Of a DNA stretch of 64,000 nucleotides, positions 20,101-51,082 are shown piece by piece. Below the pieces are notes generated by a model. The model made no database searches. It saw nothing but the letters and a program-made list of their open reading frames with translations, and had not been told where the DNA came from. A program made the translations under genes and the position numbers. This DNA comes from Phaeosaccion multiseriatum. Taxonomy: Eukaryota; Protista; Ochrophyta, other classes. The stretch covers positions 186,001-250,000 of the forward strand of contig OZ218956.1 of NCBI GenBank assembly GCA_965112735.1. Reading direction: 5' to 3'. Position 1 is the stretch's first letter. Each line of letters begins with the position of its first letter.

Positions 20101-23100
20101 GTTGCTGCTGCTGTATCACCAACTGCTGCTCCTCCTCTTGCTCCACCTCCGATTCCTGCTGCCCGCCGCTGCCCCCCCTGGGCATGGGCAGTCCCCCTCC
20201 CCCCGTCTTTCCCTTGTTGACGAAGCTGTGCTGGTGGCGGGTAGCCTCTCGTGGGAGGAAGAACAGTGCCGACGCCGGGTCAGCCTTCGGACTGGCGTTT
20301 CCCCGCTGCTGGCTCTGCGCCCAGTCCTGGCCACGCTGAAGCGCCTCCCGCCTTGCCTCCCCCTCTCCCTCCCCCCATCCCTCCGCCTCCCCCCTCCCCT
20401 CTCCTCCTCCTCCCCCCCCCACATCCCCCCTACCCCCCTCCACGCACTGCACAAGCTGCACCTCTATGGAGCAGGGCAGCACATTCTGCAGCACGTAGGA
20501 AGGGTGCACCACTAGCAGCCACTGGGCCCCCTCGCCCCCCTCCTCCAGCACTGAGCCCACCCCCCCCCCGCCCTCGCCCCCCTCAGCCAGGCCCTTGGAG
20601 GAAGTGCGCCTCGGTGGTGAGGAAGGGCTCGTCAAAGGGGTGATAGGCGCTCTTGCCTTGGGAGACGCACGGCCGTGAAGGTGACCATCACCAACCCGTA
20701 TTGAGTCTCGCTCTCCCCCTCCTCCTCCCGACACGGTCCGCTCTGGCTGCTGCTGCTGTTGGTTGTCCGTATAGCCGCCAGCAGTGCCCCCACCCATACT
20801 GCCCGAGAAAGTCCCTGCGTAGCTGCTCAAGTGGCTGCTCCTCCTCCTCTGCCTGCCTGTCTGCCTGCCTGCCTGCCTGCTCGCCTTGCCCCTGCCCCTG
20901 CCCCCCTTGCCCTGCTGAGTGCCCACCGCTCCGAAGTGATCTCCGAGCCCAACGCTGTGACCCGCCCCTCCCGACGCATCCCTCCTCCTGTGCAAGTACA
21001 GCGAGTTTGCCTCCATCTGCTCCGTCCTCCGGAGCCGCATAGGGATGGCAGTGGATGACGGGTCGAAGAGCGCAGGGGAGAGCCGTAGAGACAGACCCTC
21101 ACCCCGCACGCCGCACCTGCCACAGTTACAATACAGTTACAATACAGTTCCAATACAGTTCCAATACAGTTCCAATACAGGTACAGCAGAGTGGCCCTTG
21201 ATCATATGATGGGAAGCCCATACATCGACATGCTCGATACGGAAATCGAGATCAGCAAACTGAAACTGCATGGCCCCTTACCTGGTGGCGTCGCCTTTGA
21301 GGCTGAGGCGATGACTCTCCAGGAGAGGCAGGGGAAGGGGAAGTACCTCCTCCACCGCCAGGGCCAAAGGAAGCTCTCTCTCTCTTCCTCCTCTTGACAT
21401 GGGCGGTGGTGACTGGGGAGAAGAGTCGAACCCCAATCCCGAGAGATCGACCTGAGGGCGAGGAGGTGGGGCGAGGAGGGGGCGGGCCGGGCCGGGGCGG
21501 TGGGAGTGAAGCGCTGCAAGCTTGGAAGCATCGAGGCTTTGTAGGCACTCGCAGCAAGCACTCAGTAACCACTCACTCACCTCCACGGGCGAAGTCGACT
21601 TGTTGCTGAGGGCGACGTTCGAATACAGGTCCAGCACGAGCCCATCTGTGACTCCTCCGTGTGGGCCCTGTTGGCCAGCGGCGAGCCCCTGCCCTCCTCT
21701 GCCTGACGATACGCTTGACGACAAGGCCGCTCGGGTTACCTTCACCACGAGCCCCTGTCAGCAGATGAGGGAATAGAGGCGTACAGGGAGGGAGGGGGTT
21801 ACGAGGCATAAGAGGCATTGGGGTGGGCGTCGGCTCATCCCGTGAGTGTAGCAATGGGATGGACAGCCGCAATGAGCAGGACAGACAGCCGCAAGCGATG
21901 GAGTACTGTACCGCCGTGTGAGTGTGACGTGCGAGGTGTGTGGCCCTCCCTCCCTCCCTCCCTCCCTCCCTCCCTCCCTCCCTCCCTCCCTCCCTCCCTC
22001 CGTCCGTCCCTCTCCCTCCCTCCGTCCCTCTCCCTCCCTCGCTAGCTCGCTCCCTCCGTCCTTCCCTCCCTCCCTCCCTCCCCTCCCTCCCCTCCTTCCC
22101 TCCCTCCCCTCCTTCCTTCCCTCCCTCCCTCTCTCCCTCCCGAACAGCAAAGACACTTACAAATCCCGATGCCCCCCCTGCTGTACAACCAACTGCTGTA
22201 GCCGGTGTCCCCGTCCCGAAACCCGTGGGGGCTCCGCTGCTGCCTCTCCGGATCGGGGAAGGCGGCCCCTGCCAAAAGCCGCCCCCCAGCGCCCCTCCCC
22301 CCGCCCCGCCCCTGTCGCCCTCCTGTTTGGCTTTGGATGCATACCACAGAGGGAAGACCGCGGTGTGCGGCTCCGGCCTAAGCAGCGCGAGCACCGGGCG
22401 ATAGCCCTCCACCACCAGCGTCAAAGGGTATCTGACACTGTTGCCACCGTACTCGGTGGACGAGTGAGTGTCACGAAGAGCGCTAACAGGCACCGCACAC
22501 ACCACACTCCTTCCGTGTCGTACCGCCACGCTGCTGTGGGGTGTCAGGACGGGCATGCCCAGGGGTGTACGGCCTGGCTCTGTGCCCTCTGCCACCCCGA
22601 TCTCCTCCTCCTCCTCCTCCTCCTCCTCCTCCTCCTCCTCCTCCTCCTCCTCCTCCTCCTTGCCCCCCTCCTCTTCTTCCTCATGCTCCTCCTCCTCCTC
22701 GTCGTCCTCCTCCTCTTCCTCCTCCTCCTCCTCCTCCTCCCCCCCGCCCCCCGCCTCCTCTGTCTCCCCGCAGTCCCCTAGCGACAGCCCCTCGAAGAGC
22801 GCCACTTCAAGCCCTTCCCCTGTCACACTCACGACCCTTCCCAGTCGGTTGCGTAGTGTCAGCCTCAGCAGTTGGTGATCTGGGTCAGCCCCCACACCCC
22901 TCGAGGGGTCCAGCCCAGAGAGGGTCCCCTGCCCATACTCATCGCAGTAGCTGCTCGGTCAGGTACGGGGAGTGCATACACCCAGGCATATGGGCAGGCA
23001 TATGGGCAGGCAGGCGTATGGGCAGAGTAAGCGAGGGGACCATACGCCTCAGATGCGCTGTGATGCGGAGGGGAGAGCGTCTAGAGTGCCGAAAGAGATT

Positions 23101-33679: not shown

Positions 33680-34692
33680 ATACGTTATGATCATGTCAAA
33701 GGGTGGGGGGTAGCAGCGACGACGGCGCACAACACAAAGCGGGATGCAGGACCACCGAAGCACCGACCCGCCTTCCTCACTGCCGTATCACCAACTGCCG
33801 CACCGTACCTCCAGTGGAGCGCGGAAGGCGTGGGCCTGCTCCTGCTGCGACTGGTTGGGTCCCGCCCCCCTCCCAAACAGCTGCACCTGCAGCCCTTCCA
33901 GCACCACCTCCTGAATGAAAATCTCCCTGAGGTGCGTGCTCTTCTCCCACGCAGACAGCCGCAATCTCATGACGTGTCTGGCGAAGTCGAGGCCTGCAAG
34001 GAAGGCCGGAGAGGCCGGGGACAGCCCCTCCAGCACCGACATGTCGATGACGTCATCCTTCATCCCCATCCCGCCATCGGAAACCTCTGATGAGGATGGT
34101 GCCTCCACCCTCGGGAAGTGCCAGCCCCTTGCTTGCTTGCGGAGGAGAATCATCTCGCCGAAGGTCATGTTCTGGGCAGAAACCGGAGAGGGGGGGGGTG
34201 GGCGCGTTGGTGAGTGAGTGAGTGAGTGAGTGAGGGAGGGAAGGAAAGAGGGAGGGAGGGAGGGAGGGAAGGAAAGAGGGAGGGAGGGAGGGAGGGAGGG
34301 AGGGAGGGAGGGAGGGAGGGAGGGAGGGAGGGAGAAAGGGAGGGAGGGAGGGAGGGAGGGAGGGAGGGAGGGAAGGAGGGAGGGAAGGAGGGAGGGAAGG
34401 AGGGAGGGAAGGAGGGAGGGAAGGAGGGAAGGAGATCTCATCCGGCCCGCCCAATCCTCTCATGTGCCTGTCACGGCGGTACGCCTGCCATGCCCATACA
34501 CCTCTCACCTCCTCCAGCTCGTCCAACACGTCCTTCCTCCTGCGCAGGGCCGCCCTCCGCATGCTTGACACCTCACGCCGGCTGCCGAAGGCCTGCACAT
34601 ACCTGAGTGGGGGAAGGGGGGGGGATGAAGGTCGGTCTATACCAGAAATCCACTAGGGGGGGTAACAAGCATCGCCACGGAAAGAGACAGAG

Positions 34693-34724
<32 letters not shown>

Positions 34725-35150
34725 GACAGCCCCTCCTGCTTGTCCCTCGCTCCCTTCCCATGAGCCCCCCTCCCCCTCCCTCCCTCCCTCCCTCCCTCCC
34801 TCCACGCACTGCCGCCCCGAAGCCCCACCTCTCTACCCCCCGACACAGGAGGTCCTACTGACACACTGAAACTGAAACTGACCTGGCCCTCTGGCTGGTG
34901 GTGAGTGGCCTCGTCCTTGACTGCGAGAGGTCTCTGAGCTTAGCCTTCCACATGGAGTACTTTCCCGGGCAGAAGGTGCCCAGGCAGCTGAACAGGAAGC
35001 TCCGCATCTGGTTGGCTTGCACGCGGAAGCGCACCTATAGCAGCGTTGGTGATCCATCAGCAGAAGGAGCAAAAGTAGTGACGCCCAGTTAGCAGTTAGC
35101 AAGAAAAACATGTTAGTGAGCACAAGTCCCTAGGCAACAAGTAATTACGA

Positions 35151-35195
<45 letters not shown>

Positions 35196-35326
35196 TGTAA
35201 GTAGGGTGGGCGTCGGTGATCCATCGCAGAAGGAGCAGCGATAGTGTGTGACAACGTTAGCAGCAGCAAGTATGAGGTAAGTGAGAGTAAAGAAGTATAC
35301 GAAGTTAGGAAGTAAGAAAGAAGTAC

Positions 35327-35357
<31 letters not shown>

Positions 35358-35690
35358 GAGTGGACGACTCTCTATGAGTCCCTCTGCCCCGCGCGTACGT
35401 ACACACCACCCACCTGACCGAAGTGCCCCCTCGTCCTCAGGCGCTTGCCCCTGCCCCCAGGCGTCACTATTGTGTTGAGCAGGAGCGTGCGGAATATGTC
35501 AGGGAACTCGAACACGAATCTTCCCTCCGCAACCGTCAGGGCTGGGAACTGCGGACTCCGGCTCCCCTCCTCCTCCTCCTCCTCCTCCTCCTCCTCCTCC
35601 TGCTGCTGCTGCTGCTGCTGCTGCTCCCCCTCCTGCTGCTGCCCCTCCTGCTGCTGCCCCTTCTCCTCCTCCTCCCCCTCCTCCTCCTCA

Positions 35691-35731
<41 letters not shown>

Positions 35732-36843
35732 GGCCGAAGGCGTGGCCGTGCGCGTGCGTGGGAGCAGCGGGTCCACGTAGAAGCAGAGTCCTTCGATGCT
35801 CACCACGTGCGGAGTGGCCCCGAGGCTGTCCTTATCCCTCATGGCCAGGTCAGACCGGCACGACACCGCCGCCAACACGAGGCCGAAGCTGTGGCCGAAG
35901 ACGCGGTCCTCCACTCGCCAGTGCAGGTCTGTGACTGTGAAGACAAGGTGGTTGATGAGGCTATCCACAATGAAGCCCCACCTCTTGAGGCGCCGTCCGT
36001 AGGTGCCTTCGATGAGGTGCGTCACGTAGTCTGCGTCCCAACGCCGGAACATGGATGCCTTCTTGTAGTAGCGGCTTCAGTCAGAGAGAGAGAGAGAGAG
36101 AGAGAGGCGCAAGAGATAGGAGGCAAGGGGGCAGGGAGGGCGACACGAATGGACGGGATGGGCGATGCAAGTAAACGTGAGACATGAGTCGGATTCCCCT
36201 CAAGAGCTGAGTACCAAGGAAAGGAGTGGCAGTTGGCAGCAGGGCCCGTCCTATCCCGTTCCCATCCCATCTATAGCGCCCACACTCACTCCTCGTTCCA
36301 CTCGTCCTCGTGCGTGCGTCTCCCGCTGAGCATGACTCCATCGAGCGTGGCGATGAAAGAGCCCTGCCTCCATAGCCGGAAGGGGCTCAGCACCGCGCAC
36401 ACGCTGCGCACCGTGCAGCGCTCCACTTTGAGCGGGATACCCCTGTGCATGTACTCGTTCACCAGGGACTCCTGGACCCAGTCGGACACCACCACATCTC
36501 GCAGAAGCAGCTCCGGCCATGAGAAAGACAAGTAGCTCCTCCACGCTGGGCCTGCTGCATCCGTCCCAGGCCACAGCAGCTCCAGCGTGAGCCCCTCGTC
36601 CATACATAACAGCCTCGACTTACGCACCACCCACAGCAAGGCGGCACAGAGCCGTTGCTGAGCCGCAGCCGGACGGAGTTTAAAGAACAGAGCCAGTCCA
36701 AGCAAGATCAAAAGGGGAAAGAGGAGGAGGAGCAGGCCTGCCAGCCGCCACAGAGAGCGCGGCCCAGAGATCAGGGGCAGCACACACGCCGCAGCAGCCA
36801 CAGCCACGCTGGCTGCTGCTTCTCTCCTCGGCAAGCCCGTCAT
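9651..36843 (-). CDS. VPS13: VPS13-family (bridge-like lipid transfer) protein, many exons; exon structure only partly resolved
   Basis: 5' exons 36290-36843, 35414-36074, 34883-35034, 34509-34602, 33809-34171 are phase-consistent and chorein-like ([28 protein letters not shown]). Also [17 protein letters not shown]-like repeats ([64 protein letters not shown]), [16 protein letters not shown], and C-terminal [21 protein letters not shown] and [50 protein letters not shown] (ATG2_C-like). Last exon is inferred to end at 9651. Confidence 0.88.
16111..16322. repeat. 15-bp minisatellite (ctatcctgacaccag) x ~14
   Basis: Direct reading; VPS13 intron. Confidence 0.95.
16888..17236. repeat. (GACA)n intronic microsatellite
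   Basis: Direct reading; VPS13 intron. Confidence 0.95.
23390..23555. repeat. ~15-bp GGCATA(T/G)GGGCAGA tandem repeat
   Basis: Direct reading; VPS13 intron. Confidence 0.9.
24195..24551. repeat. (CA)n-type intronic microsatellite
   Basis: Direct reading. Similar tracts at ~1320, ~11990, ~26150, ~33595 and ~48175. Confidence 0.95.
27500..27768. repeat. 30/42-bp minisatellite (agtagaggggacatgttagttagtacgaca) x ~8
   Basis: Two 42-bp units followed by ~six 30-bp units, in a VPS13 intron. Confidence 0.9.
30880..31290. repeat. ~32-bp minisatellite built on CCATCCACTGCCATCCCCTCCCCTGCCCCTCA
   Basis: Direct reading; VPS13 intron. Confidence 0.9.
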
Positions 36844-36984
36844 TGCATGGACTTTGGGACGCCTAATTACAAAAATAAGAAGAGGGCTGGATACGACACA
36901 GCTTTCCACTGCCATCGCAGCCTTTAACAACCAAAGCACGATACCTTCCTCTTCTCTCTCCTTGGTTCTTGGTTCCTCAATACC
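36844..36984. promoter_or_regulatory. Putative bidirectional promoter/5' UTR region between divergent ATGs (VPS13 and dead GT90 copy)
   Basis: Only ~140 bp separate the minus-strand ATG (36843) and plus-strand ATG (36985). The paralogous spacer is 46551-46678. Confidence 0.55.
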
Positions 36985-37142
36985 ATGTCGACAGCTCTTT
37001 CCTCCTGCCCCGCCGCTGTGCTTGCGAGGCCTCTATGACAAAGAGGCCTCAGATCCCGAGCTGCTTGGAAAGGAGCTGGACAACTCCATGTTCTCAGACC
37101 CGACCTTCGACATAAGGACGACTGCGTGGAGTTCGTCAAGAG
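36985..37142 (+). pseudogene. Dead copy of GT90 exon 1
   Basis: Compared with 46679-46860 it has a +1 T at codon 5 (gctctttcct vs gctcttcct) and a ~24-bp deletion removing LPQKGFLR. No downstream exons follow. Confidence 0.9.
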
Positions 37143-39206
37143 GTGAGTGCCATTGGGCCTCGGTGCGTGTTGCCTAAGTACTGCTGCTGCTGCTGCGGCG
37201 GCGGCTGGTGGTGGTACTGCTTTCTCTTCCTTGTTGATTTCTTGCACTTGCTTGCACGCCCCACAGGCAGCGAGCGGAAGCTTGTTTCTCACACCGGCCG
37301 GCGACGGATCTTTGTTGTGCCCATGCAGGGTGACCCGGCGGGACAAGCTTCTGGCTGGGCTTACTTCCAGCGGGCATGGAGTCAGAGCCTTGAGGGGCTC
37401 GCGGTATGAACACGCAGTGGGCTGGCTGGCTCCCCTTCGCTTCAACACTCGAGCAGGGGCCGCGAGGGACTCCAGACATGTTCGGCTTTCAGCTTCCTTC
37501 CCAGCCCGGCGGCGGTGACAGGCGAGCGACTAGGAGGGGACTGAGGATTTGCCTCCCTTGCCATTCATGGGCGAAGTTTTAAAGGCAGTAAGAAGCAGGT
37601 TTTGTTGTGCCTTAGCTACTTTGCTCCACCTCGGTGTGTCATCCTGCCCAAGAGGGGGAGATGTAGACTGCCGTCCGGCAGCTAGCCCTAAGCCACCAAG
37701 GAACAGCCAAGCTGTGCACAAGGCCACACGCGTCACTGCATCTAGAGGTGTGAAGCGTTACGGAGTGTCATGATGATGCTGAGCCAAGACGGGGAGGCAG
37801 GGACCGCCCCTGAGCGTTCGGCAGCCTGTGGGGCGCTCGAAGATGGGAAGTAGCGAGGAGGGAGGAGGGAGACTCCGGCTCGAGCGACGACATGAGCTCG
37901 ACTGGCTGCACCTCGCCCAGCCAATTCACGCATTCCCACGAAGGCAGGGAAGGGCCTCTCCATTCTGCCGCTCCTCCCAGGAGACAACAGAAGGCAGCCA
38001 GGATGGGGAGGAGGAGCGAGCTGGGGACAGGAGGGACAGGATGGGGAGGAGATGCCCAGTCAAACCGAGCAAGGGACAGGAGGCATATGGGCAAGCCGCT
38101 GCCCGGATTGAGGCGGCTGTACAAGTAGAAGGGACACCAAGCCTCTAGGCCGGCCGGGGCTGCTTCCGACTGGCTGGAGCGGAGCGCCCTGTGGAGCCCT
38201 CACTGGCCACGAGGAAGCTGGGCGGAGGGGGCGGATGGTCACGCGCTCGACACCGCTACAGCCGAGAACGATGGGAGATTGCAGTAGCCCCCCCCCAGGC
38301 AGGCCACAGCTCTTAACTGAAATTTCATTTGGATAAGACATGCTGCATTATGTGGTTTGCTCACCACTCCCACGTTGCTGTCTGTCTACTCTGCCCTATC
38401 CGCACCTACTCCCTAAAACTATTCATTTTTAATTATCAATTAATTACTTCCTTACCGTACCATGAATACGAGATACGCTTGGGCAGCTGCACCTCATCCC
38501 CCGCCCTCTTGTTGGTGGCACGACAGCGGCTGGCTGGGCTGCTCCTCCCCTTGCCCTTCCTCTGCCCACGTGCAGCGGCGGCAGGGCGCGAGGCGGTGTG
38601 CCTGCCTCTGAAGACAGCGAGTGAAGGCAACACTTGCACTGCCCCCCTACGGGCAAGGGGTGGCAGAAAGAGTAGAGCAGGGCATAGCTAGGAGAGAGGT
38701 GCAGGGCACGGCAGGGCAGAGCAGGGCAGAACAGACAGCGGTACATACGAGGCCGAGCACGCACCGCGCCTGCTCGACTCGCTCATTCCCTGGACTCACC
38801 AACTTACTCACCTGCTCGCTCGGCCTGCGAAGTTGCCTGCCGCGTTGATGACGAGGGAGGGGGGAGGTGTGAAGAGTCCAGTCCCGCCGTCGACTGCCAT
38901 CCCCCTGCCCCTCTCTGCCGCCCTCCTCCTCCTCCTCCTCCTCCTCCTCCTCCTCCTCCTCCTCCTCCTCCTCCTCCTCCTCCTCCTCGCTCCTCGCTCC
39001 TCCCCCTCTCCTTAACTCCGCCACCACGCAAGATCGTTGCTCCATGGTGGGGAGAGTGGTAGGGGGCGCCGAGCGTGGGTGTGCTGTAGGCTATAACCAA
39101 AGGGCCTGCTGGCACCGAGGTCTCTTCTACTTCTGCTCACCTAATACTCCAGAAGGGCAGAGCAGAGCACAAGATCGTTGCTCCATGCTGGTGGGGAACT
39201 GTAGTG

Positions 39207-40386
39207 TCGGCTCCAGACTGGCCTAGAAGCCTATGCCCTAGGCCGGCCATTTTCTCTCCCTCTAGGCCGGCGGTTCTAGGCCTAGGCCTCGACCCTGGAT
39301 AAGAATATCTGATTACTGATTACGGCCGGCGCAGCCGGCCTGATCACTGATTATGACCAGCGCCAGCCGGCCTGATTACTGATGATGCGCCAGCCGGGGG
39401 CTGATTACTCATTACGGCCGGGGGGCACACCGGAATCTTGTCCAGGGTCGAAGGGAGGGAGGGAGGGAGGGAGGGAGGGAGGGAGGGAGGGAGGGAGGGA
39501 GGGAAGGAGGGAGAGAGGGAGGGAGGGAGGGAGGGAGGGAGGGAGGGAGGGAGGGAGGGAGAAAGGGAGGGAGGGAGGGAGGGAGGGAGGGAGAAGGGAG
39601 GGAGGGAGGGAGGGAGGGAGGGAGGGAGGGAGGGAGGGAGGAAAGGAGGGAGGGAGCGAGGGAGCGAGGGAGGGAGGGAGGGAGGGACGGAGGGACGGAG
39701 GGAGGGAGGGAGGGAGGGAGGGAGGGAGGGAGGGAGGGCGGGAAGGAGGGAGGGAGGAGGGAGGGAGGGAGGGCAGGAGAGAAGGAGGGAGGGAGGGAGA
39801 AAGGGAGGGAGGGAGGGGAGGGAGGGAGGGAGGGAGGGACGGAGGGAGGGAGGGAGGGAGGGAGGGAGGGAGGGAGGGAGGGAGGGAGGGAGGGAGGGAG
39901 GGAGGGAGGGAGGGAGGGAGGGAGGGAGGGAGGGAGGGAGGGAGGGAGGGAGGGAGGGAGGGAGGGAGGGAGGGAGGGAGGGAGGGAGGGAGGGAGGGAG
40001 GGAGGGAGGGAGGGAGGGAGGGAGGGAGGGAGGCAGGGAGGCAGGGAGGGAGGGAGGGAGGGAGGGAGGGAGGGAGGGAGGGAGGGAGGGAGGGAGGGAG
40101 GGAGGGAGGGAGGGAGGGAGGGAGGGAGGGAGGGAGGGAGGGAGGGAGGGAGGGAGGGAGGGAGGGAGGGAGGGAGGGAGGGAGGGAGGAAGGGAGGGAG
40201 GGAGGTGCGCCAGCCGGGGGCTGATTACTGATTACGGCCGGCGCACACCGTAATCTTGTCCAGGGTCGAAAGGCCTAGGCCGGGGGGGCTGCGCCAAAAA
40301 TAGGCCTAGGCCGTGGGCCTCCGGCCCCCTCTAGGCCGGCCGAATTTCGTCTCTAGGCCTAGGCTTCTAGGCCAGTCTGGGGCCGA
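39207..40386. mobile_element. Non-autonomous TIR DNA transposon (MITE-like), 27-bp TIRs, 6-bp TSD GTAGTG
   Basis: Left TIR tcggctccagactggcctagaagccta (39207-39233) is the reverse complement of 40360-40386 with 1 mismatch. GTAGTG lies at 39201-39206 and 40387-40392. Subterminal CTAGGCC and CTGATTACTGATTACGGCCGG repeats; no transposase ORF. Confidence 0.85.
39453..40204. repeat. (GGGA)n tract of ~750 bp inside the TIR element
   Basis: Direct reading; flanked by ~65-bp direct repeats at ~39386-39452 and ~40207-40270. Confidence 0.95.
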
Positions 40387-41192
40387 GTAGTGTGCAACCA
40401 CCGCTCAGCGCCTCCACCAAGAGGGCCTGGCGCCGAGTATTCTAGTAGATCAGGGCAGAGTAGAGCAGAGCAGGGCAGAGCAGAGCAGAGCAGGGCAGAG
40501 CAGGGCAGGGCAGAGGGCGGAGCAGAGCAAATAGCTACTATACCAAGCTAAACCTTTGCTTCCTCTTTGCTTCCTCCCCCTTCTCCGCTTACCTTCAGGC
40601 GACTCCTGCACTGCCGGTGAGACTTCTCCGGATCCCGCCACAATGGCGCGGCCCCGCCTCAGGACAGAGCACCGCAGGGCAGAGCAAAGCAAGACCGCTT
40701 CGTCCCACTACTCCGCTCACCTTCAGGAGGCTCCGGCACTGCCGGCGAGATTGCTCTCTATCCCACCACAATGGCTCAAGAGCGAGAAGTGCGCAACTCA
40801 GCCTTCCCCCCCCCCCCTCTTTCTCCTTTATGATGCGCCTTCATTCCTTCAGCAGCAGCGCCAACATCGTCAATTCCTGCGCCTCTGCTGTCGTCCCTCG
40901 CCGCCTTCTCCACCTGCTTTTGTCGCTGCCCTCCGTGCATCCCCGGAAGGAGCATGGCAAGGAGGGGGTGGTGCCACTGATACCCGAGTAGTAGCAGCAT
41001 TACCTTATCAAGGAGAAATGATATTATAGAAAAGGGGAAGGAGAAGCGCCTCTCTCCACATTGGGAAAGTGGTTGTCCAGCTTTCCGGCTTGGCAGCAGC
41101 TGTTCCCGCGAGAAGGGAGATCACGCGAGATTGTATCTGCTTCCCCAAAGTCACTTCAGTAGCAGCCTCAGCAAGAAGAAAAGCGGTGGGTG

Positions 41193-44100
41193 ATGGCCGA
41201 CGTACTCGAGCAGCAGCAGCGCAGGACACTCTCCGCCTTCTTCCGCGCCACAGGCGGCCCGACATCCTGGGAAAGGAAGAGCGGATGGAATACCCCAGCA
41301 CCTTTGAAGGACTGGCATGGGGTGACCGTGGAGAATGGCTATGTGGTTGGGCTTGACCTGGGTGATTATTGCAACGGTAATGGGCTCGTAGGTAAGAAGA
41401 TGGTGTGTGAGGAGGGAGGGGGCTGCAAGTCGTCGCTTTCTCCCAAATTGCTTATCACGCTTCTCTGAACTGTTGGCGCGAAGCTGATACCCGGCAATGG
41501 AGGGGTCGAGGCATATGCGAGACGCCTTGCGCCACCGAGAAGAGAAGGGGGGGGAAAGTGCCTTTTACGCCAGGCCCTGGTGTCGTCTGCTGCCCCAGTG
41601 TCGAGTGGCACGCACGAACTAAAAGAACTTTCCTCTCCTCTCTTCGCAGGAAACATTCCGCCGGAGCTTGGCCAGCTCTCCAATCTGAAGGAACTGGGTC
41701 TCAGCAACAACCAGCTCTCTGGTAAGTGGCAGCAACCCTCGGGGCCCACTTGGCTCGATATTGGCGTGACCAAACATCTTTCCTCTCCTCTCTTCGCAGG
41801 AAATATTCCGCCGGAGCTTGGCCAGCTCTCCAATCTGAAGGAACTGGGTCTCAGCAACAACCAGCTCTCTGGTAAGTGGCAGCAACCCTCGGGGCCCACT
41901 TGGCTCGATATTGGCGTGACCAAACATCTTTCCTCTCCTCTTCGCAGGAAACATTCCGCCGGAGCTTGGCCAGCTCTCCAATCTGAAGGAACTGGCTCTC
42001 TACAACAACCAGCTCTCTGGTAAGTGGCAGCAACCCTCGGGGCCCACTTGGCTGGATATTAGCGTGACCAAACATCTTTCCTCTCCTCTCTTCGCAGGAA
42101 ACATTCCGCCGGAGCTTGGCCAGCTCCCCAATCTGACGACACTGTGGCTCAGCTACAACCAGCTCTCTGGTAAGTGGCAGCAACCCTCGGGGCCCACTTG
42201 GCTCGATATTGGCGTGACCAAACATCTTTCCTCTCCTCTCTTCGCAGGAAATATTCCGCCGGAGCTTGGCCAGCTCTCCAATCTGGAGGTACTGGATCTC
42301 GACAACAACCAGCTCTCTGGTAAGTGGCAGCAACCCTCGGGGCCCACTTGGCTGGATATTGCCGTGACCAAGGAAAGATCTTACCTCTCCTCAGCAGGCT
42401 GCATTTGCATGGAGCGGGCAGATGTTTGACTGGGCCCATAGTTGAAAGACGTGTTCCCGGCAACTCAAATCCCTCCTCCCCCCCTCGCTTCTTCTGGGCA
42501 TTGCACGTCTTGGGGCTGGTGCTGGCCTGGCTGTGTGGTTTGGGTGGGGGGGGGGGCTACTTGATCGATTTTGACGTCTTGTCCTGCATGCTTGCCCTAC
42601 CGCTCCCCCCAATTACTCCACTCTCTCTGCCCTTATTATAAAAATACCCATCTGGCTGTCTTCGGGGATCTGACGTAATCTGACTTGAGGAATGTCCTGC
42701 CTCCTCTCCCATGCCGAACGTGCACACCTGCAGAGAAGGAGCCTTCGATAACGGAGCTACGGGCGAGGTGGCAAGCGCGCGTCGCCACGGAGGTAAGGGC
42801 GAGGGTGCATGCAAACAGTCACGGAGTGAGGTGTCGAAGCGCAATGCGCACTGTCGGCGTTCATGGGAGGCGATGGAGGGGGGTATGCCGACAACGACAG
42901 CCAGGCTTACCATTCGAGTGGCAGAAGTTTCTTTAGCACTGACGCGTCCTTCGCGCCTCCTGCCCCTCCTCTTCCTCCTTCACCGCACCGCCCCTGCACC
43001 TCCTCTGAAAGAGTGCCTCACAGGCGGCTGCGAGAGTCTCAAGAGGCTCAGCAGCATGCTCATCTCCAGGAAGAAGACATGAGACGGAGCTCAGAGCTTT
43101 ACGAGCGGCACTGGAAGGGAGAGATGGTGAGCTGGGGGGGCTGAGAGCGGCGCTGGAAGGGAGAGACGGTGAGCTGGGGGGGCTGAGAGCGGCGCTGGAG
43201 GGGAGAGATGGTGAGCTGAGAGCTTTAAGAGGAACGCTTCAAGAACGCAATGACGAAGTGGAAGCGAGAGATGCTGAGCTGGAAGCTTCGAGGTCAAGGC
43301 TGCAAGAGAGAGACGGTGAGGTGGAAGAGAGAGATGGTGAGCTGAGTGCTTTAAGAGCAACGCTTCAAGAAAGAGACGACGAAGTGGAAGCGAGAGATGC
43401 TGAGCTGGAAGCTTCGAGGTCAAGGCTGCAAGAAAGAGACGACGAAGTGGAAGCTCTGAGAGCAAGAGTCGCTGAGCTTGAGGAGCAGGAGGAGCTTCGC
43501 CTTGCTGGAGAGCGCCCACCACCCCCTCCCCAGCAAGAGGGGCGGGACTTTCGCCTCTTCTACACTTCACAGCTGGCGGAGGCGTGTGCTGACTTTGCGG
43601 ATACGGACCTGCTGCTGGGCAGGGGGGGCTTCGGGGCGGTGTATCGAGGACGTGGCGCGGCCTTGGGGCTGGGGAGCGCGCAGGAGGTGGCCGTGAAGAA
43701 GCTCGACGCGGACAGTATGCAGACACTGGCCAACTTCCGGAAAGAGGTGAGGGTGTTGACGCTGTGTCTGCATGCGAACCTCCTGCCGCTGCTGGGCGTC
43801 TGCCTAGACCCGTGCTGCCTGGTGTATCCCCTCATGAGGGGAGGCAGCTTGGACGCGTATCTGCCCGTCCGCGCAACGCTGCAGGGAGGCTCGGAGCGAG
43901 GGCCGCTGTCCGCCCCGAGACGGTTGGGTGTAGCGCTCGGCGTTGCCAGAGCCCTGATGTACCTGCACAGCGAGATGGGCGAGAAGCCCCGAATCATCCA
44001 CCGGGATGTCAAGCCCCACAACATCCTCTTGGAGGAGGCGAGTGAGGGGGACGCCTCCCTGGGAGTGCGTCTGGGGGACGTGGGAATTGCTCGGGTCTCC

Positions 44101-44706
44101 GATACGACGGCAACTGCAGGAACGATGACTGGCATCGCAGGGACTTTCTTGTACATGGACCGGGATTACTTGGGCGGCGCTGAGCCCAGGTGTGAGCATG
44201 ATGTGTACTCTCTGGGCGTGGTGATGCTGGAGCTCGTCATGGGTAGGCTTGTGCGCGGAGAAGATCTGCGCCATGGTGCCAGGCAGCGGCTGTTGTCGGA
44301 CGACGGAGCGACAGCGGTGGCCGATTCAGCCATCTCTTGGACTGGAGGGGCCACGGGTCTGCTTCAGTTGCTCGCAAGCATGGCGTACCGCTGTACCCAG
44401 GACGATCCCGAGGCCAGGCCCGCACTGGATGAGATTGCACGGACCCTGGCCGCCGCATTGGGGGGAGGGGGGGGACGGTCGGCCGCGCGAGTAGAGCCCG
44501 AGCGCGAGCGGCTGTGCATCATATGCATGGACGCAGCCCCCCACACCCGATTCTTGCCATGCCTCCATTCCTGCACCTGCGGAGCCTGTGGAATGAGGTT
44601 GCAGAACGAGCGGCGGCCTTGTCCTCTTTGCAACACGAATATCGAGGCTGTGGAGGAGGGGCGCTTCGATTCAACTTTCGTGCAAGATGGGGGCACGAGG
44701 GGATAG
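41193..44706 (+). CDS. LRR - coiled coil - IRAK/Pelle-like kinase - C3HC4 RING protein, predicted 766 aa
   Basis: Exons 41193-41391 (LRR N-cap TLSAFFRATGGPTSW..W..WHGVTVENGYVVGLDL), five 72-nt phase-1 LRR exons (41650-41721, 41800-41871, 41948-42019, 42098-42169, 42248-42319), 42734-42792 and 43024-44706 join in frame with GT-AG sites (2301 nt). Kinase motifs LGRGGFGAVY, VAVKKL, HRDVKPHNILL, DVGIAR, DVYSLGVVMLEL; RING CIICMD..FLPCLHSCTCGAC..CPLC. The LRR-to-kinase junction is inferred. Confidence 0.75.
41625..42370 (+). repeat. Five tandem 150-bp exon+intron LRR cassettes
   Basis: Unit = 72-nt exon + 78-nt intron (one is 76 nt). Introns are nearly identical (gtaagtggcagcaaccctcggggcccacttggct...ctcttcgcag). 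Confidence 0.97.
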
Positions 44707-45308
44707 GAGGGGAGGAGGCAGGGCTGGTGGTGGTGGTGGTGGTGGTCCCCCTCAGGACGGTTCGTCCCCATCTCCATACATTAATAGTCTTGTTGGATCC
44801 AACCTACGATATAAGGACGAGCCCCGTACACCTGTACACCGATGTTATATCGGGATGTGCGTTGTGCCTTGTAGGGCCCTCACAGCGTCAGGTAAGCGCT
44901 TGGTGTGCTTTGGTGTGCGAAGGGGAGGAGTCTTCCGACGTCACTGGTCTGACGATGAGAGAGAGAGAGAGAGAGAGAGAGGAGGGCTTGTGAGTCAAGT
45001 GCACTGCAGAGGGCCTGCGCTGATTAGGCAGGTTGGATAAGAAGGAGGGAGCACACTCGGGGATTCATTGACATGGGCTGAAATGTCTCCTCTCTCTCTC
45101 TTGTACATCGCTCACTAGGGTCACTCGGCATCGTTTATAAATGTATATACAGTTACTATCTCTGTTCGCCCTCCCGCTGAAAATGTACAGCACAAAACTT
45201 GCAGATGAGCACCACATAAACTTGAGCTTGCCGGGAGGCAGGCCAGCGCTCGCGAGGGCACAGCCCTCAGTGAGCCAAAGCCCTGGGGGGAAGAGGCAGT
45301 GAGTTGAG

Positions 45309-45755
45309 CCCTCAATTGATCCTCACTTCTCAGAGTCAAAACCCTCAATTGATCCTCAGTTCTCAGAGTCAAAACCCTCAATTGATCCTCAGTTCTCAGA
45401 GTCAAAACCCTCAATTGATCCTCAGTCCTCAGAGTCAAAACCCTCAATTGATCCTCAGTTCTCAGAGTCAAAACCCTCAATTGATCCTCAGTTCTCACAG
45501 TCAAAACCCTCAATTGATCCTCAGTTCTCAGAGTCAAAACCCTCAATTGATCCTCAGTTCTCAGAGTCAAAACCCTCAATTGATCCTCAGTCCTCAGAGT
45601 CAAAACCCTCAAGTGATCCTCAGTCCTCATAGGCAAAACCCTCAATTGATCCTCAGTTCTCAGAGTCAAAACCCTCAATTGATCCTCAGTTCTCAGAGTC
45701 AAAACCCTCAATTGATCCTCAGTTCTCAGAGTCAAAGCCCTCAATTGATCCTCAG
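45309..45755. repeat. 33-bp minisatellite, ~13-14 copies
   Basis: Unit ccctcaattgatcctcagttctcagagtcaaaa, near-identical head-to-tail copies with no spacers. Confidence 0.95.
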
Positions 45756-45892
45756 CCAGTCCTCATAGCCAAAGCCCTCAGCTCTCCGCCCTCCGTGAGT
45801 CAAAGCCCTCGTGCTGCGCCCTCTCGCTGCATCGTCGAGTCAATCGCATCGAGGCAGCCCTGTTGCTGCCAGTGAGCTTCGTTTCGCCCACC

Positions 45893-46937
45893 AGACGTGA
45901 GTTCCCGAGAGTTGACTACCAAGGGAAAAACGAGAGGCAGTAGGCAGCAGCCCCCGTCCTATCCCGCTCCCACCCCATCGAGAGCACACACACTCACTCC
46001 TCGTTCCACTCGTCCTCGTGCGTGCGTCTCCCGCTGAGCATGACTCCATCGAGCGTGGCGATGAAAGAGCCCTGCCTCCACAGCCGGAAGGGGCTCAGCA
46101 CCGCGCACACGCTGCGCACCGTGCAGCGCTCCACCTTGAGCGGGATGCCCCTGTGCATGTACTTATTCACCAGGGACTCCTGGACCCAGTCGGACACCAC
46201 CACATCTCGCAGAAGCAGCTCCGGCCATGAGAAAGACAAGTAGCTCCTCCACGCTGCGCGTGCTGCATCCGTCCCAGGCCAAAGCAGCTCCAGCGTGAGC
46301 CCCTCGTCCATACATAACAGCCTCGACTTACGCACCACCCACAGCAAGGCGGCACAGAGCCGTTGCTGAGCCGCAGCCGGACGGAGTTTAAAGAACAGAG
46401 CCAGCCCAAGCAAGATCAAAGCGGGGAGGAGGAGGAGGAGCAGGCCTGCCAGTCGCCACAGAGAGTGCAGCCCGAGATCAGGGGCAGCACACACACTGCA
46501 GCAGCCACAGCCACGCTGGCTGCTGCTTCTCTCCTCGGCAAGCCCGTCATTGCATGGACTTTGGGACGCCTAATTACAAAAACAATGAATGTGGATACAT
46601 GGCTTTCCAGTGCCATCGCAGCCTTTAACAACCAAAGCACGATACCTTCCTCTTCTCACAGCTTGGTTCCTCAATACCATGTCGACAGCTCTTCCTCCTG
46701 CCCCGCCACCGTGCTTGCGAGGCCTCTATGACAAAGAGGCCTCAGATCCCGAGCTACTTGGGAAGGAGCTGGACAACTCCATGTTCTCAGACCCGAGCTT
46801 GCCGCAGAAGGGTTTCCTGCGCTTCGACAACAAGGACGACTGCGTGGAGTTCGTCAAGAGGTGAGTATGCCATTGGGCCTCGGTGCGTGTAGCCTAAGTA
46901 CTGCTGCTGCTGCTGTGGCTGGTGGTGGTACTGCTTT
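45893..46937. repeat. Right copy of ~1 kb direct segmental duplication
   Basis: Matches 36180-37223. Confidence 0.95.
45998..46550 (-). pseudogene. Dead copy of VPS13 exon 1
   Basis: Same [13 protein letters not shown] start, but a 1-nt deletion near 46472 (gcagcccgaga vs gcggcccagaga) shifts the frame to a stop after ~44 codons. No exon 2 downstream. Confidence 0.88.
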
Positions 46938-48209
46938 GGCTTGCAAGGCTTAGTTCCCTCGTATTAGTAATCGCTGCCCTCCCCCCCCCCTCCCACAGAC
47001 ACTGCGTGCGCTCGTCCAACCCGTCCTACCCGTGGCTGCAGCAAATCTTCACCACTCTGCTGGACTGGCGCCAGGTGCAGACCCACCTGGTGGAAAAGAT
47101 GCAGTACCTCAACAAGAAGTATCCTCCTCGCCCCACGCCGCAAATCGACGAGAGCCAAAACGTGTACATGTGTGGTGAGTTTATCAGTCAGTCAGGCGAC
47201 TTCGCTCTGTCGTGTGTGGTGAGTCAAGTCAGCCAGGTCAGGTGGCTTCCGCTCTCCAGCAAAGGAGAGCGGGGAGCGAAAAGCACCCAGGGCAGCCTCC
47301 AGCCTCGTCCACGCTGCTCCTGTCGGAGGTCACCGAGAGCCCATGAATACGGTCCTACAACTCGTGGGAATCTCATCTCGTCCCAATCATTCTCCCTCCC
47401 CTCGCTACACAGGCGGCAAGGCGGGCGACAAGAGCTCTCAGGCGGTGCGAGAGGGGGTCAAGCGGCGACTGTCCCTTCCCTTTCATCGCTGCCTGACGCA
47501 GGAGAGCAGTATGAACACCCTGCGCTACCTGTTCTTTCACATGCGCTGCGGCATCTTCGTGATGATCCGCAACAACAAGCTCGTCATGTTCGTGTCCTTC
47601 GCCAACAAGGACTACAAGAACAACTGGGGCAAGAGGTGTGTGTGTGTGTGTGTGTTTGTCTCCACCTCCTTTGTTTCCCCCTCTCTTTCTTCCTTCCTTC
47701 CTTCCCACCTGGGCAAGGACCGACCCCCCCCAACCTTCCTTCCTTCCTTCCTTCCTTCCTTCCTTCCTTCCTTCCTTCCTTCCTTCTCTTTCTTTCTTTC
47801 TTCCTCTCTGCCGCCCATCCTCCACTCTCTGTGCTCGTGTGCAGACTGCGTGTCCCTGCGGATCTGGACCGCTACTACGCCGACAAGCGGGGGTCAGGTT
47901 ATCGTAAGGAGACCATCATCGGCGATGTGGATCAATGGTGGGCCAACGGGAACATCATCTGCAACGAGCACCAGCGCCCAGGTCAGTCGTTCAGTCAGTG
48001 ATTCGGTCAGTCGGTCGGTCAGTCATTCAGTCAGTCGGTCAGTCCTTCAGGCAGGCAGACAGTCATTCTGTCAGTCTGTCAGCTCGTCTTTCAGTCAGTC
48101 AGTCATTCAGTCAGTCAGTCAGTCAGTCAGCCACTTGCTGCACTTGCGCTACTGCCTCACTCGCTCTTCATACACACTCACACACACACACACATACACA
48201 CACATACAT

Positions 48210-48249
<40 letters not shown>

Positions 48250-51082
48250 GCCAGGCGAGACCCGCAGCCAGTATTGGGGCGACCAATTCGTGAGCCCTCT
48301 GCGTGACCTGCTGGAGCAAGCTTGTGAGTCCAGGCAGATGGCGGACTGCGAGTTCTTCATCAACAAGAGGGACTACCCGCATCTCAAGTTCAACCCCGAG
48401 TCTCTGGAGCCCGTGGAGCCCTACGGCTTCATCTATGACAAGGACGACCGCCTGCCCGAGGTATGTGCGTGTGTGTGTGCTGTGTGTGTGTGTGTGTGTG
48501 TGCGCGTGTGTGTGTGTCATTTGTGGATTCGTGTTGGTTGTGGTGCAAAAGGTTTTTCGTTCCTTCTTCGAAGAGTTTGGGTTCATTGCCAAAGCTTGAT
48601 TCGCGAGGTAGTGAGAGAGAACGAGAGAGAGAGAGAGCTAGAGCGGGAGGGAGGAAGGCCCGAAGGGGCTTCTTGAACCCGCGGCACCCACCCACTCACC
48701 CACCCATCCACCCATCCACCCACCCCTCAGGAGGACGTGCCGCTGGGACAGTACAAGTACAAAGCATACACGCCCATTGTAAGCTTCTACTGCAGCGAGC
48801 GCTTCTCTGACATCCCCTTCCCCACCTCCGAGGATTGGGAGGCTGCCACTGGCAAGGTATACCCCAAGACCTTTAAGCATCGCTACGAGAGAGTCTTCTC
48901 CAAACCGCCTGCCGAGGGGGGGGCTGCGAAGGCGGGATCGGAGCAGCAGGGCGAGGGAGCAGGGAAGGGGGAAGGGGCAGGGGAGGAGAATTCCCCTGAG
49001 CAGCAGCAGCCGGGCCCACCCAAGCGAGAGCTGGTGGTGGATGCCCCCCGGGATCTGTTCACAGATGAGAACTTTCGCAAGTTCAAGTGCGCGTGGGAGG
49101 ACAAGGTGGGCAGGCAAGGACGGAGGGAGGGAAGGACGGAGGGAGGGAGGGGATGGGAGGGGGGGAGGGAGGGAGGGAAGGACAGAGGGAGGGAGGGGAT
49201 GGAAGAGAGGGAGGGAGGGAGGGAGGGAGGGAGGGAGGGAGGGAGGGAGAAAAGGGAAGGAAGGAAGGGAAAGAAGAAAGCAAGATCGAGTCAGTCCCCT
49301 TTGAGGCATACCTGAGGCACAGACCGATGACGTCATTCACTGAGAATCGATACTGAACATCGGTATCGACATTTGATGCTTATCATCGTTATCTATCATT
49401 CCACACCGGGTTCGTCTTTTAACATAAGCCCCCTCTTTCGACCCCTTCCTTCCCCCTCCTCGACCCCTCTCAGGTCAACACGGCGTTCTTCCGGGGCACT
49501 GCAACTGGCGGCGGCGTGACGGAGGAGGACAACCAACGGCTCAAGCTGGCGGCTCTGTCGCACCAGTGGAAGGACGACCCCCACCACCACAGCGTGGACA
49601 GTAGGACGGGTGCCCGCGTGCCCTTCCTTGACGCGGCCATCACGGGTTGGAACAAGCGCGACAAGAAGACGGCAAGGGAGCCCATGAAGTGTTTGCATCA
49701 GAGCGCGTTTCCCTTTCAAGGCGGTAAGGAGAATTTCACACCCATCTACGAGCAGGTGAGCGCCTAACTCCGCTGAGGTAGGGAGGAGGGGAGGGAGGGA
49801 GGGAGGGAGGGAGAGAGGGAGAGAGAGCGAGGGAGGGAGGGAGAGGGGGTGAGAGAGGGGGAGAGAGGGGGAGAGAGGTAGCCGCCCCCCGGGGATGGGA
49901 TGGGGGTGGGGTGGGGCTGACCACTAAAGCGTTTCATCGCCTCAGCACAATGCAACTGCACCTTTATTGGAACTTGAACTGCCGCGCTGCACTGCTGTCT
50001 GCTCGTGTGACGTCATCGTCCGCCATCCATCCACCCTTCAGAGCAAGTTCAAGTACGTCATTTATGCAGAGGGACACTGCGCGGCGTGTCGTTACGGCTT
50101 CATGATGCGCCTGGGGAGCGTCATCCTCAAGGCAAGTAGACTCTTCAGAGTGTGAAGAGGAGGCAGAGAAAACAGAGCACAGGAGAGGGCCAGGCTCTGT
50201 CGGCCGTCGTCACACTCTTGCTGGCCTGTATGCCTGCCTGTCTGACTGATTAACTGACTTACTCGCTGTCGAACTGAGTGTCTGACTGTCTGTCTGCCTG
50301 CCTCCCTCCCCACCTGCCAGGTTGAGTCTCGCTGCGTAGCCGACCTGATGTGGTACTTCCCCCTGCTGGAGCCGTGGGTGGACCATGTGCCCGTCAAAGC
50401 CGATTGCTCAGACCTGTCCGAGCGGCTGCAATGGTGCCATGAGAACGACGACAAGTGCAAGGAGATGGCAAGGAGGGCAGGGGAGCTCTATGACAAGTTT
50501 GTGGCCAAGGAGGCGGCACTGGACTACGTGCAGATGGTCAGCCTCGAGATTAGCGAAAAGTAAGTCAGTGAAAAAGTTATGTGTGTCAGTGAATTTGTTG
50601 GCTTCTCCCCCAGTTTCTTCCTCACTGTCTAGTCTAACCCCCCTTCTCATTCCTACTCGGTTCCCGCTTGCCTCCCTCCCTCCAGCTACCGACACCCTCC
50701 GATCTGGTGGGAGCCTCCTCCCCCACAGCAGAGTCAGCCCCTTCCGCCGAAGAACTACAATGGCCCTGCGCACTGCTTCCTAGACCGAGCCACTCGAAAG
50801 ACCAGCCTGTGTTCGAGGTGCAAGGCCGAACAGCTCGAGACGGAGGAGGCCAAGAGGCAAGCGAGCGAGAGGGCCGCGGCAGCAGCAGTGTCGACGGACT
50901 CGGGGACTTTGAACAAGCAGGCCAGGGAGAGGCTCTTGAAGCGGGGTCAAAAGAGGAAGGCGGCGAAGGAGGAGGAGGAGGCTGCGGGGAAGCAGTGGAA
51001 GCGGGAGGGGGGGCAGGGGAAGGAGGAGCAAGCCCCGCAAGCAAGCTCCGGTGGGGGAGCAGCATCACCGGCAGCGGCAGCG

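Follow-up and report, generated by a model that had tools for sequence, protein, structure and literature searches.

A gene-bearing island between two copies of a promoter and first-exon module in the alga Phaeosaccion multiseriatum

How can a gene come to lie between two closely coupled genes and leave both of them undamaged? The question is raised by a 64,000-nucleotide stretch of the Phaeosaccion multiseriatum genome (C7:186001-250000 of the assembly, referred to below as the window), in which a large minus-strand gene, V, and a plus-strand GT90/CAP10 glycosyltransferase gene, G, are separated by an island that carries an LRR-kinase-RING gene. The assembly of this GC-rich, microsatellite-rich stramenopile alga comprises 67 Mb in 22 contigs, and the sequence of the window is gap-free (zero N). 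Analysis with blastn and MAFFT revealed one direct repeat of ~1.04 kb, whose copies, R1 (36180-37223) and R2 (45893-46937), form the two borders of the island (37224-45892; 8,669 bp). In a whole-genome search, this 1,044-bp module, R, was found in these two copies only, both at this locus; the remaining matches correspond to a 40-bp triplet microsatellite at its right edge.

The duplicated module and its two genes

Each copy of R contains the first exon of V, the first exon of G and the spacer between them (Table 1). The breakpoints lie in the first introns of the two genes, 110 and 81 bp past the exons, and the promoter is duplicated whole. The original prediction for this stretch, a first reading of its letters and open reading frames (ORFs), had given the ends of both copies exactly, as judged by the three-way comparison with which we set the junctions, and had correctly described the LRR-kinase-RING gene between them. 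The comparison of the copies and of their divergence that it called for likewise yielded one direct repeat, diverged and present twice. The insertion point that it proposed, inside a bidirectional promoter, has to be replaced by the breakpoints in the two first introns.

The right-hand copy of the GT90 exon is the one connected to the rest of gene G. The product of exon 1 in R2 aligns with the first residues of the 704-aa orthologue P0001 (E 4e-9), and exon 2, which lies outside the repeat, aligns with the residues of P0001 that directly follow (E 4e-20). Further exons reach at least position 50560, and the Pfam family PF05686 (Glyco_transf_90) is matched above its curated cut-off (32.6 bits) in the interval 50354-50533. 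A HMMER search with a single GT90 exon matched 218 proteins at E up to 0.001, the best of them 64% identical over 95 residues, and the named relatives are CAP10-domain proteins or members of glycosyl transferase family 90 from oomycetes. On these matches, the assignment of gene G to GT90 is solid, and the working exon copy is that in R2. The left-hand copy carries two frame-breaking indels, an extra T and a 25-bp deletion, the latter of which takes out the conserved SLPQKGFLRF stretch.

For gene V, the situation is the reverse. The V exon in R1 is followed by a 215-nt intron with its acceptor at 36076-36075, and the ORF of exon 2 continues in frame from 36074; both exons have a high, coding-type GC content at third codon positions (GC3), which reaches 0.8-0.95 in the core of exon 1. 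The exon copy in R2 retains its donor site, and no exon-2-like sequence was found after it. This orphan exon differs from its R1 counterpart by three non-synonymous and five synonymous substitutions. It also has a 1-bp deletion opposite A36766 of R1, between the two candidate starts (36843 and 36603) and upstream of the orphan ORF. The original prediction, which held that the left V exon and the right GT90 exon are intact and the other two broken, is borne out for three of these exons: the left V exon splices in frame to exon 2, the right GT90 exon matches its orthologues and runs on into exon 2, and the left GT90 exon has lost its frame twice. For the right V exon, the predicted frameshift is present as the 1-bp deletion; since the ORF is intact from the second Met, the frame is broken only if translation begins at the upstream Met. 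Neither the GC3 profile nor the codon positions hit by substitutions favor one Met over the other.

The two copies of R are 90.7% identical over 1,051 alignment columns, gaps included, with 7% substitutions and eight indels. Judged by this divergence, the duplication is old, and because the copies are old and differ by eight indels, they are not a trivial doubling introduced by the assembly. The substitutions are unevenly distributed: per site, they amount to 15-17% in the two intronic edges of R, 11% in the spacer, 7% in the GT90 exon, 5% in the upstream part of the V ORF and 2.2% in the core of the V exon (36290-36648 versus 45998-46356). The V core is thus less diverged than both the non-coding parts of R (Fisher p 8e-9) and the GT90 exon (p 0.01), and its eight differences compare with ~32 expected if one copy had drifted freely.

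The island and its homologue on contig 6

With the transposable element and the gene masked, both ends of the island match a single further locus of the genome (C6:4017385-4018836), in the same order. The match consists of 5-6 collinear segments with E values down to 4e-27 genome-wide (37318-37353, 37697-37752, 38172-38256, 45118-45372, 45693-45831 and 45826-45892), and the alignment takes the homology of the left part back as far as 37224. We refer to the two outer parts of the island that share this homology as the shell, S. The limits of the contig-6 homology (37224 and 45892) coincide with the R1 and R2 junctions, so that R1 ends and R2 starts (37223/45893) where the homology between the two copies stops and the homology of the insert begins; no target bases were lost. 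At the junctions, the sequences meet bluntly or share a few bases of possible microhomology (CTTT/TCT at junction 1, at most two bases at junction 2), as read against a donor that is ~30% diverged. Contig 6 contains neither a copy of R nor a duplication around its copy of the shell, and apart from this homologue the island ends are unique in the genome.

A 31-base word, ATGCAGGGTGACCCGGCGGGACAAGCTTCTG, is identical in both shells (37323-37353; C6:4017461-4017491) amid surroundings that are ~30% diverged. The word has no further occurrence in the genome, and conservation does not extend to the ORFs downstream of it. In the right shell, a 33-bp minisatellite (45309-45755) comprises 13.5 units of 96% identity; at the homologous site on contig 6 (C6:4018577-4018711), ~135 bp can be aligned and the array is barely expanded. 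By this comparison, the array is one that expanded in the island.

The shell surrounds an inner segment of ~6.8 kb, at the position of which contig 6 has 85 bp. The inner segment contains a fragment of an old dispersed repeat, a (CCT)30 array, a miniature inverted-repeat transposable element (MITE) and the LRR-kinase-RING gene, the only gene of the island. The dispersed-repeat fragment (38476-38601) has at least 12 other copies of 70-85% identity. We also considered whether the inner 6.8 kb has a target duplication of its own and abandoned this, the three-way alignment there being ambiguous.

The element at 39207-40386 has 31-nt terminal inverted repeats (TIRs) that are 94% complementary and start with TCGGCTCCAGACTGG, and it is flanked by a 6-bp target duplication. 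It belongs to a family of at least 40 genome copies that are 81-95% identical and 1.15-1.45 kb long, the length following that of the internal (AGGG)n array; target duplications of 6-7 bp were present at the eight other copies checked. On its ends, target duplication and copy number, the element is classified as a MITE. Dada-type elements create target duplications of 6-7 bp.

The LRR-kinase-RING gene has an older paralogue on contig 6, with 81% nucleotide identity in the kinase-RING exon and 77% protein identity, and another older one on contig 2, with 62% protein identity. In both cases the homology is limited to the gene body, so the gene in the island was not recently copied from a paralogue present in the genome today. 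Its LRR region (41628-42371) is built of tandem 150-bp units, each consisting of an exon and an intron, that are 93-94% identical.

No coding signal was detected in the island beyond this gene, and no Rfam family in the region 34000-49000. The island itself was considered as a mobile element and rejected as such. An inverted-repeat scan of its ends returned only low-complexity matches, and neither a transposase nor a recombinase signal was found, in agreement with the original prediction on this point, the MITE inside the island notwithstanding; moreover, the duplication around it is 1,044 bp long and not a short target site duplication of fixed length.

Table 1 Features of the R1-island-R2 locus, in window coordinates.
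Feature	Position	Strand	Description
R1, left module copy	36180-37223		V intron 1 (part) and exon 1, spacer, broken exon 1 and part of intron 1 of GT90
Functional V exon 1 (in R1)	36290-36843	-	Start at 36843 or Met at 36603; GTGAGT donor 36289-36284
Broken GT90 exon 1 (in R1)	36985-37142	+	+1 T after codon 5; 25-bp deletion; donor GTGAGT retained
Left shell S	37224-38256	+	Collinear with C6:4017385-4018303; homology begins at the R1 junction
Inner segment	38257-45054	+	~6.8 kb; contig 6 has 85 bp here
MITE	39207-40386		1,180 bp; 31-bp TIRs; internal (AGGG)n array; target duplication GTAGTG (6 bp)
LRR-kinase-RING gene	41194-44706	+	LRR repeats, coiled-coil repeats, protein kinase, C3HC4 RING; only gene of the island
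Right shell S	45055-45892 (start approximate)	+	Collinear with C6:4018388-4018836; ends exactly at the R2 junction
R2, right module copy	45893-46937		Orphan V exon 1, spacer, functional exon 1 and part of intron 1 of GT90
Orphan V exon 1 (in R2)	45998-46311	-	ORF open from second Met; donor retained; exon 2 absent
Functional GT90 exon 1 (in R2)	46679-46860	+	ATG start; GTGAGT donor at end
GT90 exon 2	46999-47174	+	Outside the repeat

Origin of the arrangement

Because the duplicated unit holds both first exons and the spacer between them, V and G were adjacent at the time of its copying. In the ancestral state, the two genes would have stood head to head, with their first exons parted by a short shared promoter, as the original prediction had also supposed. 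We propose that a single-strand break or a replication switch point arose in each of the two first introns, at a spacing of 1,044 bp, and that DNA related to a contig-6 locus, the shell, was joined in while the sequence between the two points was copied on both sides, giving the order V-body / R1 / S / R2 / G-body. By one route, a long staggered break would have been filled in and a captured fragment end-joined. By another, equally expected, a replication template switch would have copied S and re-entered the locus 1 kb behind. The inner 6.8-kb segment with the LRR-kinase-RING gene could have arrived with S or have been inserted into it later, and the MITE would be a later arrival still, with the 6-bp duplication usual for it.

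Such an event would have harmed neither gene, as had been predicted: each body would have kept the full promoter and the first exon, which would explain why both genes survived, and each remains attached to its own copy. The spare first exons, in turn, would have been without a gene body from the outset and would have drifted since. As they never had a body to serve, their decay is better described as passive than as a reciprocal loss of function. Of the reciprocal pseudogenization that the original prediction envisaged, the breakage of the GT90 copy in R1 stands; the orphan V exon is broken conditionally, depending on its start codon.

Several observations argue for this sequence of events. 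The homology of the insert stops on both sides precisely where the duplication starts, as a single event would leave it. A direct duplication of non-repetitive target DNA adjoins the insert on both sides, as expected of a staggered break, and an ectopic source of the insert is retained in the genome, the only matches being those at C6:4017385-4018836; the direction of copying, from contig 6 to the present locus, we infer. Taken together, we regard the insertion of ectopic DNA with a 1,044-bp target duplication, through staggered-break fill-in or template switching and followed by passive decay of the orphan exons, as the probable origin of the locus.

Several points weigh against this reading. 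The core of the orphan V exon, at 2.2% divergence, has changed far less than would be expected under neutral decay, and an extra assumption is required: the low divergence may reflect either gene conversion of the center of the repeat or constraint on the orphan copy, for example if the orphan V exon serves the GT90 gene as regulatory sequence upstream of it. The shell and its contig-6 homologue are separated by a Kimura two-parameter (K2P) distance of 0.34-0.41, about twice that of the R edges (0.17-0.19). To account for this mismatch in age, either the insert may have had some other direct donor than the contig-6 locus seen today, or the two copies of R may have been partly homogenized. At the present divergence, the junctions do not allow microhomology to be read with confidence, and the insert, at 8.7 kb, exceeds the comparable cases described in rice. 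Finally, the uninterrupted V-G pair is a state deduced from the structure of the duplicated unit in this one genome.

The same end product could have been reached in two separate events, if a tandem duplication of 1 kb came first and one or more unrelated insertions later struck the R1/R2 junction. Tandem duplications are common repair products, and the layered structure of the island (shell, inner segment and MITE) shows that the locus has received several insertions. S would, however, have to have landed exactly on the junction between the copies, where neither copy lost or gained bases, whereas a single event yields such precise junctions without coincidence. We consider this order of events unlikely, though it deserves to be kept in mind.

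It has also to be asked whether the GT90 gene had a long intron 1 in which the shell and the LRR-kinase-RING gene already resided, and a copy of the module was later placed just upstream of exon 2, its proximal exon 1 taking over. The donor site retained by the GT90 exon 1 of R1 would fit this history, as would the divergence between S and contig 6, which exceeds that between R1 and R2 as if S predated the duplication. However, the implied intron would measure nearly 9 kb, against 138 and 215 nt for the first introns observed, and two coincidences would be needed: the right end of R1 and the place where R2 was inserted would each have to fall by chance on a limit of the contig-6 homology. This makes the old-intron history improbable.

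Integration of a circle, one of the routes named in the original prediction, would require a Campbell-type event in which the chromosomal R recombined with a circle that bore the island together with an R of its own. A single crossover with such a circle would yield exactly R-insert-R, and the reverse reaction, which the original prediction also raised, is plausible. There is nevertheless no source for the circle, since the shell on contig 6 has no adjoining R and R occurs nowhere else in the genome; in addition, the shell homology stops precisely at R, which fits end joining and not homologous exchange inside R. On these grounds, circle integration is very improbable.

An assembly artefact, through stacked haplotypes or misjoined reads, is hardly credible even though false duplications do occur in long-read assemblies and the locus was judged here from assembled sequence alone, because the 7% substitutions and eight indels between the copies are non-random (each copy has one broken exon, and differences in the other exon lean toward synonymous sites), the copies lie in gap-free sequence in which the unique flanking gene bodies each need one copy, and the assembly contains no alternative contig with an empty site.

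Comparison with known systems and consequences for the locus

Insertion of ectopic DNA with a long target duplication has counterparts among known processes. Transposon insertion also places a segment between direct target duplications; unlike transposons, the island has no terminal repeats, transposase or recombinase at its ends, and transposon target duplications are ~100-fold shorter than the 1,044 bp seen here. Those of the resident MITE family, at 6-7 bp, illustrate the difference. Under fork stalling and template switching (FoSTeS) and microhomology-mediated break-induced replication (MMBIR), a duplication is expected to carry a templated insertion at its junction and the donor locus to stay intact, and the hallmark of these processes is microhomology at every junction. 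The duplication and the templated insert at the present locus are alike, whereas the hallmark is not readable at a divergence of ~30% between donor and copy.

At Drosophila inversion breakpoints, the fill-in of staggered breaks leaves duplications of 46 bp to ~1.9 kb that include parts of genes (Ranz et al. 2007, PMC1885836), and these duplications then decay through substitutions and small deletions (PMC1885836). The present case is similar in that non-repetitive DNA between offset breaks ends up on both sides, and its 1,044 bp are within the same size range (PMC1885836). It differs in that the Drosophila events are inversions with inverted duplications, whereas here a foreign insert is flanked by a direct one (PMC1885836). 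In rice, natural insertions that combine a tandem duplication with ectopic filler DNA have been explained by nicks at offset positions and subsequent end joining (Vaughn and Bennetzen 2014, as described in PMC7407515). The likeness extends, as far as that description goes, to both the target duplication and the ectopic donor (PMC7407515). The rice events are given there as 10-1000 bp; the duplication described here reaches the upper end of those sizes, and the insert, at 1.9 kb for the shell and 8.7 kb for the whole island, is larger and bears a gene (PMC7407515).

We therefore regard the locus as a clean natural example of a known break-repair scar, and not as a new mobile element or mechanism. 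It is a well-preserved record of a gene entering between two closely coupled neighbors with damage to neither, the doubling of the whole promoter and first-exon module having left each of them a working copy, and it extends to a stramenopile alga a repair signature known chiefly from descriptions in flies and plants.

R1 and R2, each 1 kb long, could also recombine with each other. Wherever between the lesions a crossover fell, the 98%-identical 420-bp core included, it would plausibly restore one working module and delete the island; the original prediction, which had the crossover rejoin the ancestral pair, is sustained in this respect. Presence/absence variation and circular excision are likewise plausible. 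The immune-receptor-like gene would be lost in such an exchange, which makes for a simple polymorphism test.

The GT90-side promoter of R1 points into the island, towards the LRR-kinase-RING gene. In addition, the donor site of the broken GT90 exon (37143) faces a pyrimidine-rich, acceptor-like site, CCCCACAG, 120 bp downstream, inside the shell (37143-37265), a distance that fits the local intron size. With the donor kept and an acceptor-like site in the shell, a transcript from the duplicated promoter could splice into the island. Whether the locus is one instance of a habitual route of insertion in this alga is a tentative idea that we consider doubtful; if true, genes inserted in this way could gain promoter copies ready for use.

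The identity of gene V was sought with several methods. A word search for relatives with the exon-1 ORF returned no matches, and exons 1-2 gave no relevant match to Pfam or PDB sequences even at E 10. In six-frame translation, PF12624 (Chorein/VPS13 N-terminal) matched three other loci of the genome and none in the window. BLASTP against the N-terminus of the canonical VPS13 of the same genome gave nothing for exon 1 and a non-significant match for exon 2 (E 1.6). A VAB match below threshold (15.9 bits against a cut-off of 22.6) was obtained in a separate ORF (18614-21136) that lies 16 kb from exon 1; it was not recovered in a six-frame search of the window with PF25036. The top Atlas matches are VAB clusters, a weak lead with a score of only 0.84, and for exons 1-2 the likeness to VPS13 consists of motif resemblance by eye only. 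The name VPS13 given to V in the original prediction thus finds no match in exon 1 and keeps the VAB match and the Atlas lead, which point weakly to a VPS13-like gene.

A scan of metagenomes retrieved 54 GT90 loci from relatives with protein identities of 32-64%. Searches of these 54 loci with the V exon peptides (tblastn) gave no significant match, and the upstream neighbors, among those listed for 23 loci, are unrelated genes; relatives at this distance are too remote to inform on the ancestral arrangement. In several intron-less metagenomic GT90 orthologues, the divergent upstream neighbor is the same ORF of ~470-570 aa, which by eye resembles a SET-domain methyltransferase. The GT90 gene thus has a head-to-head partner there too, albeit a different one.

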